A stretch of DNA of 64,000 nucleotides from Selaginella moellendorffii (taxonomy: Eukaryota; Plantae; Lycopodiophyta): contig NW_003314382.1 of NCBI RefSeq assembly GCF_000143415.4, forward strand, positions 150,210 through 214,209. The letters are read 5' to 3'. A model generated the notes under the pieces. That model was not told the origin of the DNA, ran no database searches, and worked only from the letters and a program-made list of their open reading frames with translations. Of the stretch, positions 39,694-48,073 are shown in pieces. Position numbers and translations under genes: made by a program. How positions within the stretch are numbered: position 1 is the stretch's first letter; each line of letters opens with the position of its first letter.

Positions 39694-40935
39694 TTACAGA
39701 GAGAAGTTCTCACCATCTTCCAGGGAATAGACGCCGGTAAGCATCACATAAGGAGCAGCGTTCTCGGGGTCACACTCCAGTGCTCGTCTAGCAATGCGTT
39801 CTCCACGATCACTCTCGCCATTTAAGTTGCAAGCTCCAACTAGCGATCTGGACATCGCCATCTCCACTGCGGGCATGGAAGCAGCGAATTCTTCCGCCTC
39901 GCGGAGCCTCCCGGATCGACCAAGGAGCTCGATCATGCAGCAAAAGTGCTGGTGACTGGGGACGAGGTGGTGGTCTTGGATCATCGAGAGGAAGTACCAG
40001 CGGCCAATCTCGACGAGGCCGATGTGATTGCAAGCGGCGAGGAGGGTGAGAAAGGTGACGGAGTTTGGGGCGATTCCCTCCATCGCCATGAAGCTAAAGA
40101 GCTCGAGCGTGGTCTTGGCCTGCCCGTTTTGGGCATATGCTTGGATGAGAGCGTTCCACTCCACAAGAGACTTTTCCGGAAGCATAGAGAAGATTCTTCT
40201 GGCCATGCAAAGATCGCCATTGTGAGCATAAGCGAGGAAAAGAATTGTCCAAGCCACAGCGTTGTGTAGCGGCATCTTGTGAAATAGCTGGAGCAACAAA
40301 GCAAAATTGCCTACTTGGGCATTTGCTGCTAAGATTGTAGTCCAAGATGCTGTGTCTTTTTCCAACAGACTAAAAAACATCTCTCGAACTCTTCCAAAAT
40401 CTTGGCTTTGTAAGCAAGCATCCATCATCGCGTTGCATGACACGGAATCCCGCCGCGGCATTCGGTCAAACATGTCTTTCGCAAGCTCAAAATTCCCTTC
40501 TTGGGCAAGTGCTGCAAGAACAGTCGTCCACGACACAACATTACGATTGCCCATGATATCAAACATCTCTTTGGCTTTTCCCAAACAGCCGCTTCGAGCG
40601 TAAGCTTGTATCATCGCATTCCATGCGACTCGATCCTTCTCAGGCATCCTACCAAAAATCTCCCTCGATTTCTGTAAATCCCCTCTTTGGGCATACACTG
40701 CAAGCATGTTTGTCCAGGAGAAAAGATTCGGCTCCTGGATCCCATCAAACACAGCTCTGGATTCCTCCACGCTGCCGCACTTGCCATACATTTCAACCAG
40801 GAGATTCGCAAGAAATCGCTCGTGGATGAGCCCACTCTCGAGGATTTGCGCGTGGACGCATTTGCCCTGCAAGAGATCCCTGGCATTACGGCACTTCCTC
40901 ACGAGCTGGGCAAACAAATAAAGCTCATGTCTCAT
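39694..40935 (-). CDS. PLS-class PPR protein (E, no DYW)
   Basis: 413-aa intronless ORF with FLANLLVEMYGKCGS and HFCCMIELLGRSG...PYVML end. A telo-box lies just upstream (40940-40947). Confidence 0.9.
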   Translation of the reverse strand: MRHELYLFAQLVRKCRNARDLLQGKCVHAQILESGLIHERFLANLLVEMYGKCGSVEESRAVFDGIQEPNLFSWTNMLAVYAQRGDLQKSREIFGRMPEKDRVAWNAMIQAYARSGCLGKAKEMFDIMGNRNVVSWTTVLAALAQEGNFELAKDMFDRMPRRDSVSCNAMMDACLQSQDFGRVREMFFSLLEKDTASWTTILAANAQVGNFALLLQLFHKMPLHNAVAWTILFLAYAHNGDLCMARRIFSMLPEKSLVEWNALIQAYAQNGQAKTTLELFSFMAMEGIAPNSVTFLTLLAACNHIGLVEIGRWYFLSMIQDHHLVPSHQHFCCMIELLGRSGRLREAEEFAASMPAVEMAMSRSLVGACNLNGESDRGERIARRALECDPENAAPYVMLTGVYSLEDGENFSL

Positions 40936-41006: not shown

Positions 41007-42497
41007 TTAGTCTCCCATCGTCATCGTCTTCACTGCTCGCGCAAACGCTGCCAGATTCTCGTGGGAGTTCCCGCCTGGATTGGCAGTAGCGCGGGCCACA
41101 TTCTTGAGATCTTTCGCTCTCGCCCATATCTCCTCCTTGTCCATTCCACTCATGAATTCAGTGATCCGCTGCTCCACGACACCCCGGGTCACCGTGCCGC
41201 CGTCGCCTCGCCGCCACAGTCTCTTCCCCACTCGCCAGTCCTCTTCCACCAGCTTGGCGTTGGTCCTTTGCTCCGAGTGGCACGGCCATCCCAGCAGTGG
41301 CACGCCATAGCAGATGCTCTCCAGCGTCGAGTTCCAGCCGCAGTGCGAGAGAAATCCTCCGATGGAGGAGTGCGCTAGCACTCGGACTTGCGGCGCCCAC
41401 GACACGACCATTCCTTGCTCGCGCGTCCTCTCCAGAAACCCCGCGTAGAACTCGTCGTGAGTGGCGCTCCTCTTCACCAGATCCTCGCGATTCACCCAGA
41501 GAAACGCCTGCTCGCTAGCCTCCAGCCCCGCGGCGATCTCCTGGAACGTATCCTCCGAGAGAACGCTGATGCTCCCGAACGAGACGTAGAGCACGGAGCT
41601 CTCGGCGCGCGTGTCGAGCCACTTGAGGCAGCCATCCTCCTCGTCTCGGAGGCTCACTCCCTTGAGCGCTGCTGGCGATTCGTGGTGGGAGACTGGGAAG
41701 AGTGGCCCGATCGCCGCGAACTTGCTGGCTGGCAGCGCCGCTTGCATCGCGTGGAACGTCTCGGGCTCCAGCTCCGCCATGCTGTTGACGAGGATCCACT
41801 CGCAGTGCTTCATGCGATCCTGGTCGTAGTCGAAGAGAAGCCGGCGACTGGGGGTCCCGAGCTTTCGCTTGAAGTACTCCGGAAGATCACCGTACTCCAG
41901 ACCGGGAACTCCAGGGATGTACGTGATGATCCTGTCCTCCTCCCTCTCTCCTGCATGGATTTCACAAACTTGGTTGACTACTACTGACAAGAACTTTGGC
42001 TTGCCTTGGCAGAAGAGATCGCCGTGGGCCTCGAGCAGCTTCATATGGTGGTGGAGTGAGCTCCATGCTGCGTTTCCAGGCCAGTAGATTGCGCAACCGG
42101 TGCCTAACGTCCTGGCCAGCTCGAGGGGCCAGCCAAGGAAGAAGTCGGCAATGATGCAACAAGGAGTTGGCGTGAGCTCACGTACGAGCTCCTCCACCGG
42201 AGCTTTGAGGCTGTCAACTGCGTCGAAGAGAGCTTCCGGGTTCTCGAGGCACGACGCGTCCACCCCGGCCGGGAGCTTGAGGCCGCACTCGACTTGCTCC
42301 AGCCGGATGTCCGATCCCGGTGGGCAGCTCCATTGCTTGAGGAGCATCTTGTGGACGCTGTCCACGTTAACCAGCGTGACGATGATCTCGTTGGCAGCTA
42401 GCTTTCGGGCGAGATGGATCATCGGTGGAATGTGACCCTGAGCCGGGTATGGGACGAGAACAACGTGTGCGGTTTGATCTTGTGGTGTAGCACCCAT
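41007..42497 (-). CDS. Family 1 UDP-glycosyltransferase; probable in-frame 54-nt GC-AG intron at 41951-42004
   Basis: HVVLVPYPAQGHIPPM and PSPG box WAPQVRVLAHSSIGGFLSHCGWNSTLESICYGVPLLGWPCHSEQ. Confidence 0.93.
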   Translation of the reverse strand: MGATPQDQTAHVVLVPYPAQGHIPPMIHLARKLAANEIIVTLVNVDSVHKMLLKQWSCPPGSDIRLEQVECGLKLPAGVDASCLENPEALFDAVDSLKAPVEELVRELTPTPCCIIADFFLGWPLELARTLGTGCAIYWPGNAAWSSLHHHMKLLEAHGDLFCQGKPKFLSVVVNQVCEIHAGEREEDRIITYIPGVPGLEYGDLPEYFKRKLGTPSRRLLFDYDQDRMKHCEWILVNSMAELEPETFHAMQAALPASKFAAIGPLFPVSHHESPAALKGVSLRDEEDGCLKWLDTRAESSVLYVSFGSISVLSEDTFQEIAAGLEASEQAFLWVNREDLVKRSATHDEFYAGFLERTREQGMVVSWAPQVRVLAHSSIGGFLSHCGWNSTLESICYGVPLLGWPCHSEQRTNAKLVEEDWRVGKRLWRRGDGGTVTRGVVEQRITEFMSGMDKEEIWARAKDLKNVARATANPGGNSHENLAAFARAVKTMTMGD

Positions 42498-42924
42498 GGC
42501 TGGAAGAAGAGTTCGTCAAACTCTGGGAGGGGAAGAAGCTTGCGTACCTTTGGCGCTGGATGTTTAGAACTTTAGCTACGACTGTGATTCATGCTGCAAT
42601 CCCACACAAGAGGTAAGCCTCAAGCTTCTCTGTGGTGACCGTGCAAACAAGCTGGCTGCTAGTTTGCAACAAAGCACCATCACATATCAATGGCAGGAAA
42701 TTTTGAGGGGACCACAGCAACTAGGAAATTTTGTTTCGACGTGACTAACTGGCTGAAATGGATTTCCTGGTTCTCTGGATTGGGTACAAGTCTGGTAATG
42801 ACGAGGTTAATAAACTGAAATGCTGATTTGGGAGTGTGGCTAACATGTTGCCACTTGGAAGTGCAGAGTTATCTCGTAAAGGTGGAGGTGGAGCTCCAGC
42901 TCCAGCCTCGAAGCTCGTGTGGCT

Positions 42925-44137
42925 ATGGCTGCCACCGCTTGCAGTAGATTGACGTACTTTGCTAGTCCGCACGAGGCTACGCAGCTCATCAGGCCGTGCC
43001 GCTGCACGCTACTCAGATTCAAGCTGCGGCATTCGAAGGGCTTTGGTTTGCCAGAAAGAAAGGAGGCGAGGAGCATACAATCGCTGCGTGCGAGCGTAGC
43101 GGACGGGCCATCCACTTCCACTTCCACTTCCACATGTAAGTCTAGAACTTCGCGAGGAAATTTTGGTCCATCATACAGCTGATGCCAGTGCGTGCGTGCG
43201 ATGGAAGACACGTACAGTGGTGACACAGGATATAATCTTTTCTTGGAAGGGCCAAGCTTCCGAGGTGCTGCTCACCGGCGACTTCCTCGAGTGGCAAAAG
43301 CAAGTCCCTCTTGAGAAGAGCCCGGATGGTACATTTCAGATCAAGCAAGTAAGTTCTACTTCGAAGTTCTTGCAATTAGACTGTCATGGGTGTTGTTTCC
43401 AGAAGCTAGCTCCGGGATCATACAAGTACAAGTTCATCGTGGATGGCCAGTGGATGCACTCGCCGGACTCTCCGACGGCATCCGATGGTACCGGTGGCTT
43501 CAACAACGAGCTCATCGTAGCGGAGTCTGCCGCAGGTTTGATACAAGTTCTTCCATGTCTCGTGCTAGTTCATCCGTTTTTATTCGTGTGCTCGCAAAAC
43601 ACAGGCAAGGAAGCTCCTCCTCCTCCTCCGGCAAAGGAAAAGCCGGAAAAGCCCGCAACAAAGCCAAAGCCAAAGAAGCCCGCAGCCAAGACTTATCCAG
43701 CTCTCATGGTAGAAGACGTCGCTCCGCGTCTCCAAGCAAAACTGGCGAAGGAAGAGAACCTTGCTGACGTAGAAGTTTGCTTCGAGAACGACCAGGTTCG
43801 TCTCCACTCGACATCGCGATATCTTTGCCAATCACCACTTTGCAATTGCAGTTAAGGGGCTCTTTCTCGAAGCTCGGCGTTCCATACACATTCTGGGCCT
43901 ACTTCCCAGACGCGAGCTTGGAAGGTACGTGCATGGATTTTGCCATTTTGCACTCAAAATCGACACTCAAAGCTTTTGGAACAAAAAGGTGCTAGAGGAT
44001 TTTCGGTGTCTGCCTATGGATCACCTCCCAGCACCGTGGAGCCATTCTTGATCGACGAGAAGAAACTCACGGCGGATTTGATCGTGTATTGGGTGCACAA
44101 GCGCCTTTTTGCGCAAAACCTCTTGGAGTTAAACTAG
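42925..44137 (+). CDS. Plastid-targeted CBM48 (AMPK-beta/PTST-like glycan-binding) plus NdhV/DUF2996-like fusion protein, 6 exons
   Basis: Transit-like N-terminus; FSWKGQASEVLLTGDFLEW...LAPGSYKYKFIVDGQWMHSPD...GGFNNEL (CBM48); Pro/Lys linker; LMVEDVAPRL...FENDQLRGSF...YTFWAYFPD...GARGFSVSAYGS..STVEPFLIDEKKLT...VYWVHKRL (DUF2996-like). Confidence 0.82.
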
Positions 44138-44224
44138 CAAATTAAAATTTTATGTGTAACACTATAATGGTTAAAGTTAATTAACCACGTTACTAAAACA
44201 AACCGAACAGCCACGTGGCTTTGG

Positions 44225-45705
44225 CTACGTGGCGTCGTTCTTATGGCTGCCACATGGGCGGCTCTTGCCATGCCAAGTGGCGCCAGCTATGGCGGACACA
44301 TTGACCGCGTCAGCGAATCTCTTGAGGTTTTCGTGAGAGGTTCCCCCTTGGTCGGTCGTGGAGCGTACCGTGCTCCTGAGCGCCGCCATTCTGGCCCGGA
44401 TCTCGCCCATGCCCTGCCCTTCCAAGAAATCCCGGATTACCTCCTCCACTCGCCCGCGCGCCACGTCCTGATCATCCGAGAGCCGCCGCCCGATCTTCCA
44501 GTCCTCCACGAGCTTGCAATTCATGCTCTGCTCGGTGTGGCACGGCCAGCCCAGCAGTGGCACGCCATAGAAGATGCTCTCCAGGACCGAGTTCCAGCCG
44601 CAGTGGGAGAGGAATCCGGCGATGGAGTGGTGTGCCAGGACCTGGAGCTGCGGCGCCCAAGAGACCACCATCCCCCTCGGCCTCGATCGCTCGGCGAAGC
44701 CCCGGAGAGCTTCGCTGCTGGCGAACTCGTGCCGGACGTCCGCCCAGAGGAATGGCTGCTTGCTCGCCTCCAGCCCGGCCGCGAGCTCCACGATCTGGCG
44801 CTCGGGAAACAGGCACAAGCTCCCGAACGAGATGTAGAGCACAGAGGTTGTGGCCTGGGTGTGGAGCCATTCCAGGCACTCGCTCTTCTCGTCGCGGAGG
44901 CTCACCCGCGGGCTGGTGTGGCATGGGAAGAGCGGACCCACAGACACGAAGTTCTTGTTGGCCAGAGCTCCCTGCATCGCGTCGAAGGCGTGGGTCTCCA
45001 GCTCCGAGATGGAGTTCACCAGGATCCAGTCGGCGTCCTTCATGCGGTCTGCCGAGACACTGAAAAATTCGAGGATGAATCCTACCAGCTTCCTCCGGAA
45101 GTAGCTCGGGAGGTGGCGGCACCTGAAAGCGTCGAGACCTGGGACGTAGCGAATGAGCTTGTTCTCGTCGAGGCCTAGATTGCTCGATCAAAATCATGCA
45201 AGAAAAAAGAATTCTGACCTTGGAACGCGTCACCGCTGGAGACGAGCAATTGAGTGTGGTGGTGGATGGAGCTCCAGGCAGCATTTCCAGGCCAAAACGT
45301 GACGACTTTGAGGCCAAGTTTCTTTGTGATTCCCACCGCCCAACGCATGAAATAGTCGGAGATGATGCAGCATGGAGGTGGTTGCATCTCCCTCACTAGC
45401 TCCTCTACTGGGATTTGCAACCTTTCCAAAGACTCGAGTAGCCCGTCCGTGTCTTTCAATGCTTTGGCATCGATGCCACAAGGAATGAAGACATCACAAT
45501 GCACTTGCTCCAGTCTGATATCCATCCCATCCGGGCACCTCCACTGCCGGGAGAGGTTTTCATGGATGCTGTCCACGTTGAGCAGTGTGACGATGATCCC
45601 TGTTGTAGCCAGTTTTGTTGCAAGATGGATCAAGGGAAGAAGATGGCCCAGTGCAGGATATGGAAGCACCACCATATGAACTTCATTCCTACTATCCACC
45701 GACAT
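44225..45705 (-). CDS. Family 1 UDP-glycosyltransferase; one 44-nt intron at 45175-45218
   Basis: HMVVLPYPALGHLLPL and PSPG WAPQLQVLAHHSIAGFLSHCGWNSVLES...HTEQ. A phase-1 GT-AG intron joins the two ORFs (FQ|GLDENKL). Paralog of 41007-42497. Confidence 0.9.
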
Positions 45706-46003: not shown

Positions 46004-48073
46004 ATGCTAATAACAATTTGTACCTCCAGAGATGAAGCTCTAGTTACCCAGCTGGCTCGGTCGATCCGTGATGCTAGAACTCTGGCACAGGGACAATGGA
46101 TCCACAAGCTCGTCGACCAGAGTGTGCAGAGCCACAATCGCTACCTGAGAAACCTGCTGGTGGAGATGTATGGCAAGTGCCATGACTTGGAACTGGCAGT
46201 GGCAGTGTTTGAGTCCATCCGTGAGCCCAACGTTTTCTCCTGGAACATCCTGCTCGAGGTGTATGCCCGAAACGGGCATATTGAGGATGCTCGGGGCGTG
46301 TTTGATCGGATGCCACAGCGCACGGAGGTGTCGTGGACGTCGATGATTGCGGCCTACGCGAGGTTGGAGATGATCCAGGAGGCGGAGTCGCTGCTGGCTC
46401 GGATGCCATACAAGGCGGTGATTGCCGGGACCGTGATCGTGGAAGCGCTCGCGAAATCCGGGCATTTGGAGGCGAGCCGGCGGATGTTTGATCGGATGCC
46501 ACAGCGGGATGTCGTGACCTGGAACACGATGTTAGAGGCTTACGCGCGGATTGGAGATCTGGATCGAGCGAGCTTACTGTTTGACGCGATGCCGGAGAAG
46601 GATCAGGTGTCCTGGAACATCTTGGCGCAGGCGTATGCCGAGGAGGGAAATCTGGCGATAGTGAGAGATCTCTTCAAGAGAATGCCGAGGAGAGATGTGG
46701 TTTCATGGACCGCGATGCTCGTCGCGCACGCCAGCAGCTGGGAGATCGACGAGGCGATGTTCTTGTTCGAGATTATGCCCGGGAAGGATGCGATCGCCTG
46801 GAATATCATGATCGCCGCCACTGCCAGATCGGGAAATCTCCACACTGCCAAGAACCTCTTCGACAGCTCTCCAACGCGGGACCTGGTTTCTTGGAACACG
46901 GCGATCGAGGCCTTTGCCGAGCATGGCCAGCTCCAAGAAGCGAAATCCCTGTTCGACGCCATGCCCTGCCGCGATCTCTTCTCCTGGAACGCAATGCTCC
47001 AAGCGTACCTTCGATCCGACCGGCTGGAGGAGGGAATGCGCTTCTTCGATCGGATCCCGGAGCTGGACGTCGTGGCGTGGAACAGCGCGATGCAAGCGCA
47101 CGCCGAGCGAGGCCTGGTGGACGAAACCCTGCGATTGTTCCACGCAATGCCGGCGTGGAGCGTCGTCTCCTGGACGATCCTCGTCTCGGCGCTAGGGCGT
47201 GGCGGGCATTTAAAAGAGGCCAGGGAAGTATTTGACGGGGCCAGGGATCGAAACGTGATCACCTGGAACGCCATGCTTGCGTGCTATGGCGGGAAAAGGG
47301 GCAATTTAGACAGAGCGCGCGAAATATTCGATTCCATGGGCGAGAGAAATGGAATGTCGTGGGCTTTGATGATAGAAGCGTGTCTTATAAACAATAGCGT
47401 GGAGGAAGCGCAAACACTTCTCAAAACCTCGCCATCAGAGAAACCACTGGCCTGGAACTTTGTTCTGGCAGCAAATGCCCAAAATGGGCAGCTTGAGGAG
47501 ACTTTACAGACATTCCACGCGATCCCTGTCAAGGACGTAGTATCCTGGACCGCCATAGCTGCAGCATTTTCGCAGTTTGGGCACCTTGATCGATCACGCA
47601 AGATCTTTGAGACAATGCCGGAGAGGAACACTGTTTCCTGGAACGCGATGCTTCATGGCTATGCCAAGAACGCCCATGCCGTAGAGACCTTGGATCTTTA
47701 CAAGAGGATGGCGTGTGAAGGAGTTGAACCCGATACCACCACTCTCATCGCCACCTTGATCGCCTGTAACCACATTGGCTTGCTCGCTCTGGCAATCCAC
47801 CACTTCTCCTCCATGAGCTTCGATCACTCCATTGCTGAGACAATTGATCACTACTGCTGTATGATCGACATCCTTGGCCGGGCCGGCAAGATACCAGAGG
47901 CCCAAGAGCTGCTCCACACGATGCCATTCCAAGCCAACCACGTTGCATACACTGCTCTTTTAAATTCCTCCAGAAATGCTCCTCTAGCTTCTTCAGTGAG
48001 GTCGTTCCCTGTGGATACCATGTATGTTCTACTGTCCAACTTAGCAGCTCAAAATGCTACTTTTCACAATTAA
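46004..48073 (+). CDS. PLS-class PPR protein (long SS array, truncated E region)
   Basis: 689-aa intronless ORF with YLRNLLVEMYGKC and HYCCMIDILGRAG...MYVLLSNL. Confidence 0.88.
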   Translation: MLITICTSRDEALVTQLARSIRDARTLAQGQWIHKLVDQSVQSHNRYLRNLLVEMYGKCHDLELAVAVFESIREPNVFSWNILLEVYARNGHIEDARGVFDRMPQRTEVSWTSMIAAYARLEMIQEAESLLARMPYKAVIAGTVIVEALAKSGHLEASRRMFDRMPQRDVVTWNTMLEAYARIGDLDRASLLFDAMPEKDQVSWNILAQAYAEEGNLAIVRDLFKRMPRRDVVSWTAMLVAHASSWEIDEAMFLFEIMPGKDAIAWNIMIAATARSGNLHTAKNLFDSSPTRDLVSWNTAIEAFAEHGQLQEAKSLFDAMPCRDLFSWNAMLQAYLRSDRLEEGMRFFDRIPELDVVAWNSAMQAHAERGLVDETLRLFHAMPAWSVVSWTILVSALGRGGHLKEAREVFDGARDRNVITWNAMLACYGGKRGNLDRAREIFDSMGERNGMSWALMIEACLINNSVEEAQTLLKTSPSEKPLAWNFVLAANAQNGQLEETLQTFHAIPVKDVVSWTAIAAAFSQFGHLDRSRKIFETMPERNTVSWNAMLHGYAKNAHAVETLDLYKRMACEGVEPDTTTLIATLIACNHIGLLALAIHHFSSMSFDHSIAETIDHYCCMIDILGRAGKIPEAQELLHTMPFQANHVAYTALLNSSRNAPLASSVRSFPVDTMYVLLSNLAAQNATFHN

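Follow-up and report, generated by a model that had tools for sequence, protein, structure and literature searches.

Why should a lycophyte gene place a starch-type carbohydrate-binding module, CBM48, in front of NdhV, a loosely bound, transient regulatory stromal subunit at the electron-input site of photosynthetic complex I? This question is raised by a six-exon gene of Selaginella moellendorffii at positions 42925-44137 (+) of a 64-kb window, that is, of the whole stretch of DNA analyzed. Its splice model yields a product of 295 amino acids (aa), which starts with a transit-peptide-like segment and continues with a CBM48, a disordered Pro/Lys linker and, at its C-terminus, a DUF2996 domain. 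The original prediction had described precisely such a four-part single gene, and the splice model, the Pfam assignments and the identity of the spliced product to P0001 (NCBI 'uncharacterized protein LOC9631897 isoform X2 [Selaginella moellendorffii]') bear it out. What did not stand is the view of the fusion as a Selaginella oddity: while the architecture of a CBM48 joined to an 'NdhV-like' domain is real, sequence comparison makes it highly probable that the gene is the NdhV orthologue itself in its ancestral streptophyte form, which is found from Chlorokybus to ferns. We assign it so because seed-plant NdhV nests within the CBM-bearing group and because Nelumbo NdhV lacks exactly the two CBM exons.

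The Pfam scan suggested with the original prediction finds both domains above their cutoffs: aa 76-156 match AMPK1_CBM (PF16561; 87.6 bits, cutoff 26.8) and aa 187-292 match DUF2996 (PF11210; 57.3 bits, cutoff 27; profile positions 5-119/120), with exon 6 alone reaching 40.7 bits against DUF2996. In the full-length AlphaFold2 (AF2) model, aa 72-155 form a confident beta-sandwich, aa 158-182 are disordered, and aa 188-292 fold into a helix-sheet-helix unit. In Foldseek comparisons, the sandwich superimposes on isolated CBM structures of AMPK beta1/beta2 with template-modeling (TM) scores of 0.85-0.94 and root-mean-square deviations (rmsd) of 1.0-1.5 Å. We take the sugar site of the AMPK beta CBM to be formed by W100, K126, W133 and N150 (rat AMPK beta1 numbering). 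In the Selaginella protein, W96, K124, W131 and N148 align with the matching residues of AMPK beta2, and these four as well as N149 do not vary among 23 fused proteins, which range from Chlorokybus to ferns. Because this invariance of the sugar-site residues is what selection for binding predicts, glucan binding is favored, and the CBM48 of Selaginella NdhV is likely to bind glucan. The linker that follows is flexible and basic and measures ~25 to ~140 residues depending on the species.

The attribution of the C-terminal part to NdhV likewise holds. Besides the DUF2996 match, its best PDB match by sequence (phmmer) is Tlr0472, which is chain V of the NDH-1L structures 6KHI/6L7O (E 1.6e-14 for 6KHI chain V), and a domain-only AF2 model (predicted local distance difference test, pLDDT, 87.5) gives 6khi_V and 6l7o_V as its only significant PDB matches in Foldseek (TM 0.74-0.81, rmsd 2.2-2.3 Å). 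The domain-only model was used instead of the full-length one, for which CBM matches dominated the top 50 and NdhV did not appear among them. In chloroplasts, NdhV assists the docking of ferredoxin on the NDH complex. In cyanobacteria, it is a transient subunit that is held by NdhS beside NdhI and enlarges the positive ferredoxin-binding surface; its addition leads to a dose-dependent rise in ferredoxin-dependent plastoquinone reduction, and R122/K123 of the Thermosynechococcus elongatus protein contact ferredoxin (PMC7021789). This pair aligns with K271/K272 of the Selaginella protein, and 34 of 39 aligned family members carry two consecutive Lys/Arg residues there.

Beyond Selaginella, a word-indexed protein search recovered the PF16561+PF11210 architecture in Diphasiastrum, Riccia, Calypogeia, Marchantia paleacea and Closterium. 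The same type of search with the DUF2996 domain alone gave 2 matches, too few for a distribution, and an exhaustive HMMER search was used in its place: among 1.84 billion representatives it found 104 proteins, which were all screened locally for the CBM and 30 of which were named through cluster look-ups. The module is present in the named matches from Chlorokybus, Klebsormidium, Netrium, Closterium, Spirogloea, Mesotaenium, Sphagnum, Adiantum and Pteridium; among the screened matches it is absent from Ginkgo (one model), from the prasinophytes Pyramimonas and Nephroselmis, and from the cyanobacterial homologues. The fusion, which the original prediction had proposed to look for in seed-free plants and algae, thus occurs in streptophyte algae, Sphagnum, liverworts, lycophytes and ferns, and is shared by more than 20 proteins whose genomes and transcriptomes are independent of one another. 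For angiosperm NdhV, 355 matches were obtained at E <= 0.001, and the 120 listed of these contain PF11210 only, in agreement with the earlier statement that NdhV has no CBM in angiosperms or cyanobacteria. The named matches of the green lineage belong to streptophytes and to the prasinophytes Pyramimonas and Nephroselmis, both of which we take to retain plastid ndh genes; these genes are presumably also present in the listed algae and in S. moellendorffii.

No CBM-less homologue was found for any named bryophyte, lycophyte or fern except for splice isoforms of Diphasiastrum complanatum: the gene O6H91_04G031500 (P0003/P0238/P0140) has annotated isoforms of 238 and 212 aa that omit exactly the CBM48 of the 320-aa isoform. 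As predicted from these annotations, cassette skipping could provide a lycophyte with a seed-plant-like NdhV.

How the fused and the CBM-less proteins are related was addressed with a maximum-likelihood (ML) tree of the DUF2996 domain. In this tree, the labelled green-lineage sequences group as one clade (support 100/99) that roughly follows the order of the species tree, and the seed plants (99/90) stand next to the ferns (82/70) and then Selaginella (89/84), within the CBM-bearing set. Forcing the CBM-bearers into a separate clade costs 41 log-likelihood units and is rejected by the approximately unbiased (AU) test (p = 0.012).

The strongest argument for orthology is provided by the gene structures, which were obtained by mapping the exact proteins onto their loci in five species (Riccia, Sphagnum, Selaginella, Adiantum, Nelumbo). 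The first four agree in having six coding exons: right after ..TST, exon 1 closes in phase 1, exon 2 comprises 131 nt, exon 3 121 or 133 nt and exon 6 149 or 155 nt, and exon 4 ends in phase 0 at ..DNQ/DNE. Exon 5 has a length of 73 nt in every one of the five species. In Nelumbo, NdhV comprises four exons (178, 188, 73 and 155 nt) with matching boundaries and phases; it lacks precisely exons 2 and 3 and carries a 177-nt intron at the site of the cassette. In Selaginella, these two exons amount to 264 nt and constitute a phase 1-1 cassette. Moreover, in liverworts, Sphagnum and some ferns the motif QE-x-x-TST stands ahead of the CBM, and it persists at the equivalent site in Ginkgo and angiosperm NdhV. 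From the tree, the shared exon structure and this motif, we conclude that the CBM48 was probably gained at or near the base of the streptophytes as a symmetric two-exon cassette and deleted in the seed-plant lineage. The gymnosperm evidence consists of the one Ginkgo model, possibly a cassette-skipping isoform, and loss across seed plants as a whole rests on that model. In Arabidopsis, NdhV corresponds to At2g04039 (Fan et al. 2015, as cited in PMC12170339); our angiosperm clade is linked to this gene through papers calling NdhV a DUF2996 protein and through the name NdhV given by its submitter to one Zostera (Zostera marina) protein of the clade.

Some sequences retrieved with the family deserve mention in their own right. 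P0144 (203 aa, Logan assembly) is CBM-less and adjoins Closterium within the Zygnematophyceae group of the tree; it represents either a cassette-skipping isoform or an independent CBM loss in a desmid relative. P0145 (Closterium sp. NIES-53, 670 aa) and P0255 (Prunus armeniaca, 676 aa, carrying a protein-kinase name) are overlong models with an NdhV domain and probably merge neighboring genes rather than depict real architectures. P0173 stems from a metagenome-assembled genome assigned to Candidatus Caenarcaniphilales, a lineage not known to be photosynthetic; this DUF2996 protein is ~40% identical to the plant NdhV domain and groups with Leptolyngbya. Its presence there could be due to contamination of the bin; alternatively, DUF2996 proteins could really exist beyond oxygenic cyanobacteria, which would have consequences for the discussion in PMC12038448 of where NdhV came from.

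Is the fused protein encoded by one mRNA? The transcript evidence consists of assembled contigs from four public runs of four studies, in which rarer variants are dropped and isoform shares are not measurable. These contigs contain GT..AG-spliced forms and are therefore RNA-derived. Their joints 43348/43403, 43535/43605, 43795/43852 and 43924/43989 confirm introns 2-5 exactly, the second joint appearing as 43532/43602 within an ambiguity of 3-4 nt. Single contigs cross exons 1-2-3, exons 3-4 and exons 4-5-6, and the junction of exons 3 and 4 is bridged by spliced contigs in all four runs: the CBM and DUF2996 parts therefore reside on one mRNA. Two separate transcripts or skipping of the CBM exons, which the original prediction had considered, do not emerge, as the contigs link both parts and no CBM-skipping joint is among those listed for Selaginella in the four runs. 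By computation, such a skip would stay in frame and give 207 aa. The original prediction had further pointed to an uninterrupted frame (43163-43855) across the junction of the two domains, from which it deduced that the fusion is independent of splicing choices. This frame exists and the deduction holds, but it is open only when introns 2 and 3 are read through, because both (54 and 69 nt) are stop-free multiples of three.

The start of the CBM depends on intron 1, which carries three AG acceptors within 40 nt (ends 43178, 43188 and 43217). Use of the first results in an in-frame intron of 43 nt, use of the second in a frame-breaking intron of 53 nt. The productive acceptor 43217/43218 is backed by the NCBI model, which uses it, by the orthologues, which read ..TST-L-V.. 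over the junction of exons 1 and 2, and by exon 2, which has exactly 131 nt in Riccia, Sphagnum and Adiantum as well; weaker, indirect backing comes from one contig that starts exactly at 43218, as is the case where a second path joins the assembly graph. A model B with the 43-nt intron 1 (308 aa, in frame) was rejected as the main form given the 131-nt exon 2 in four distant species and the ..TST-L-V.. reading of the orthologues. Contigs that retain intron 1 occur in runs X1 and X4. The features of the locus are collected in Table 1; all five introns of the splice model are bordered by GT..AG.

Table 1. Coordinates of the CBM48-NdhV gene of S. moellendorffii in the 64-kb window
Feature	Position	Strand	Description
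5' untranslated region	42854..42924	+	RNA-derived contigs start at 42854/42865; no ATG upstream of 42925 there
Exon 1	42925..43135	+	aa 1-70 plus 1 nt; ends in phase 1; transit-peptide-like
Intron 1	43136..43217	+	82 nt in the productive model; other AG acceptors end at 43178 and 43188
Exon 2	43218..43348	+	131 nt, aa 71-114; N-terminal half of CBM48; W96 at 43292-43294
Intron 2	43349..43402	+	54 nt, in frame, stop-free; splice model and RNA contigs
Exon 3	43403..43535	+	133 nt, aa 115-158 plus 1 nt; C-terminal half of CBM48; K124 at 43430-43432, W131 at 43451-43453, N148/N149 at 43502-43507
Intron 3	43536..43604	+	69 nt, in frame, stop-free; splice model and RNA contigs
Exon 4	43605..43795	+	aa 159-222; Pro/Lys/Ala linker (~aa 158-182), then first helix and strand of DUF2996/NdhV
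Intron 4	43796..43851	+	56 nt; splice model and RNA contigs
Exon 5	43852..43924	+	73 nt, aa 223-246 plus 1 nt; central strands of the NdhV domain
Intron 5	43925..43988	+	64 nt; splice model and RNA contigs
Exon 6	43989..44137	+	aa 247-295 plus stop; C-terminal part of the NdhV domain; K271-K272 at 44060-44065
3' untranslated region	44138..44206	+	minimum extent; a contig of run X5 reaches 44206

The 70-residue N-terminus encoded by exon 1 is rich in Ser/Thr/Arg, contains few acidic residues and is disordered in the AF2 model; it closes with an (ST)n run derived from an ACTTCC microsatellite. Such a composition is compatible with a transit peptide, and together with the family membership it suggests that the S. 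moellendorffii protein is targeted to the plastid. The assembly holds a second copy, P0002 (LOC9639981), which differs from P0001 by few substitutions and two 6-nt changes in repeat length and probably represents the other haplotype of the same locus. The microsatellite at the end of exon 1 (~43108-43131) is 6 nt shorter in P0002, and a 6-nt insertion CAAAGC after 43658, which adds a Lys-Pro to the linker, is found in P0002 and in one contig of run X4; both differences (~43108-43131 and ~43658) look like haplotype length polymorphisms in low-complexity coding sequence. On the opposite strand, the gene is flanked by two open frames for UDP-glycosyltransferases (UDPGT; 41007-42497 (-) and 44225-45043 (-)), which are probably part of a tandem UGT cluster, and long intron-free pentatricopeptide repeat (PPR) open frames lie nearby at 39694-40935 (-) (413 aa) and 46004-48073 (+) (689 aa).

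A comparison with known systems places the Selaginella protein closest to NdhV. Its DUF2996 domain is 45-51% identical to those of the angiosperm sequences sampled, and both proteins have a Lys/Pro/Ala-rich segment ahead of this domain and the QE-x-x-TST motif at the end of exon 1. Intron positions and phases correspond as well, and the angiosperm clade is nested with the Selaginella gene in the tree; the angiosperm proteins, at ~200 aa, differ in lacking the 88-residue CBM48 of exons 2-3. Cyanobacterial NdhV (Tlr0472 of T. elongatus, 6KHI/6L7O chain V; Sll0272 of Synechocystis) has a like fold, the basic pair and a Pro/Lys-rich N-terminal extension but, unlike the Selaginella protein, neither a transit peptide nor a CBM. 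Experimental proof that the protein binds NDH-1L and stimulates ferredoxin-dependent plastoquinone reduction exists for this family member only (PMC7021789). The CBM48/AMPK1_CBM fold and the sugar-site residues, in turn, are shared with the plastidial proteins PTST1-3, SEX4 and LSF1 and with AMPK/SnRK1 beta subunits: by sequence, the best CBM match is LSF1 (E 5.7e-13), and SEX4 matches too. The phosphatase domain of SEX4/LSF1 and the C-terminal domain of AMPK beta are both absent from the Selaginella protein. In PTST, a long coiled coil precedes a C-terminal CBM48, whereas the Selaginella CBM is N-terminal and its partner domain is a subunit of the NADH dehydrogenase-like (NDH) complex; the AF2 model contains no long helix outside the NdhV domain. 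Identities as PTST, SEX4/LSF1 or AMPK beta were rejected on these grounds of architecture (Pfam, AF2 model).

As a whole, the best explanation, an NdhV of ancestral form that unites a glucan-binding CBM48 with an NDH-docking domain, appears to us probable on balance, and the observations that weigh against it are best considered together with the explanations that compete with it. We infer starch binding, NDH association and regulatory coupling, and the case for plastid import and for an effect on electron flow is indirect too. CBM48 modules can also act as protein-protein interfaces, as in AMPK, and the main rival builds on this capacity: the CBM48 would not bind glucan but anchor NdhV to NDH, photosystem I (PSI) or another thylakoid partner, and it would have become dispensable once seed plants gained NDH subunits. 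The AMPK beta CBM48 is known to pack on the kinase domain as well, and AMPK holo-structures are among the Foldseek matches. The loss of the CBM also falls in the lineage in which, according to the introduction of PMC11629750, NDH acquired extra subunits. We nevertheless regard an anchor as unlikely, as the sugar-site residues (two Trp, Lys, Asn) are invariant in 23 fused proteins spanning streptophyte evolution, and a long, disordered linker of variable length fits a tether better than a fixed interface. A different difficulty lies in the ferredoxin-contacting pair, which is changed in Riccia (NK), Klebsormidium (RP), Chlorokybus (RV) and the fused P0018 (RA). It has also to be asked whether the fused protein is a paralogue with a role in starch apart from NDH, for example as a ferredoxin-binding module at the granule, with the true NdhV standing alone elsewhere. 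The search for a second DUF2996 copy, which found none, covered the 64-kb window, and a stand-alone NdhV gene elsewhere in the Selaginella genome is possible; in addition, the PSI-NDH proteomics of the moss Physcomitrium found no NdhV, the protein database used having no NdhV record, according to its text (PMC11629750). A paralogue is very improbable all the same: the labelled green-lineage sequences form one clade in which seed-plant NdhV is nested among CBM-bearers, a separate CBM clade is rejected by the AU test, the introns match those of angiosperm NdhV in position and phase apart from the CBM cassette, and named bryophytes, lycophytes and ferns have no CBM-less homologue other than the Diphasiastrum isoforms.

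The transcripts raise an objection of another kind, namely that the Selaginella gene is mostly unproductive owing to a 53-nt intron 1 and makes little or no CBM-NdhV, being either down-regulated by splicing-coupled decay or on its way to being lost. The corresponding joint 43135/43189, found in each of the four runs, is the only intron-1 joint listed, and the assembled depth at this junction in run X5 is fully explained by it. Translation from 42925, the sole upstream ATG, would run out of frame across this joint and stop after 81 aa, and with 53 nt the intron resembles the other four in length (54-69 nt). On the other hand, the 295-aa frames of P0001 and P0002 are both intact, differ by few substitutions and retain every key residue, and contigs that drop rarer variants do not give isoform shares; in runs X1 and X4 the depth of the joint lies well below that of exon 2, and the contig starting exactly at 43218 fits a second, productive path. 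We therefore consider a mostly unproductive gene quite improbable; regulated unproductive splicing may account for the frame-breaking joint. Finally, an artefact of annotation or assembly that joined two neighboring genes would have nothing in its favor beyond the general risk of automated gene models, and it is refuted by the spliced contigs that bridge exons 3 and 4 in four runs and by the recurrence of architecture and exon structure in more than 20 independent proteins, so that we hold it to be practically excluded.

Returning to the ancestral-form NdhV with a glucan-binding CBM48, we envisage the following mechanism. The C-terminal NdhV domain would dock on NdhS/NdhI and promote ferredoxin binding as in cyanobacteria, while the N-terminal CBM48 on its disordered tether would bind plastidial alpha-glucan, either at the surface of the starch granule or as soluble malto-oligosaccharide. 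NdhV might then partition between starch and NDH or tether both, such that the amount of free NdhV or the position of NDH follows the glucan state of the plastid and NDH-dependent cyclic electron flow is tied to starch status. This glucan link would have disappeared from angiosperms through deletion of the two-exon CBM cassette and, if the single Ginkgo model is representative, from all seed plants. The original prediction had proposed a link between starch and thylakoids or a starch-dependent sequestration of an NDH activator; this idea remains plausible, and the glucan-binding residues are invariant. A regulatory partition of NdhV between glucan and NDH is a tentative suggestion. More doubtful still is its extension to all non-seed streptophytes, in which the CBM48 of NdhV would couple NDH cyclic electron flow to the glucan state, be it that the activator is held and released on starch or that NDH is placed beside starch: lycophyte splicing, with the skipping of the CBM cassette in Diphasiastrum and the frame-breaking acceptor in Selaginella, may tune this coupling, which would have been lost at the origin of seed plants.

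The fused sequences and their precomputed Pfam architecture are already in public databases, and no paper in the searchable literature links NdhV with CBM48, starch or carbohydrate binding; what this analysis adds is the evidence that the fusion is ancestral and was cleanly lost in seed plants, together with the functional hypothesis to which this leads. The finding also gives the moss PSI-NDH complex a specific candidate for the NdhV missed in the Physcomitrium study. Sphagnum has the fused gene; a Physcomitrium sequence was not found among our matches, which does not imply its absence, and one supplement of the Physcomitrium paper contains no glycogen, AMPK, carbohydrate, DUF2996 or starch terms. 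The locus, furthermore, illustrates neatly how a protein domain can be lost when a symmetric exon cassette is deleted. For the biology of the family, a CBM that has been kept since Chlorokybus and was then cleanly removed in seed plants suggests a link between carbon storage and cyclic electron flow that has so far gone unrecognized.

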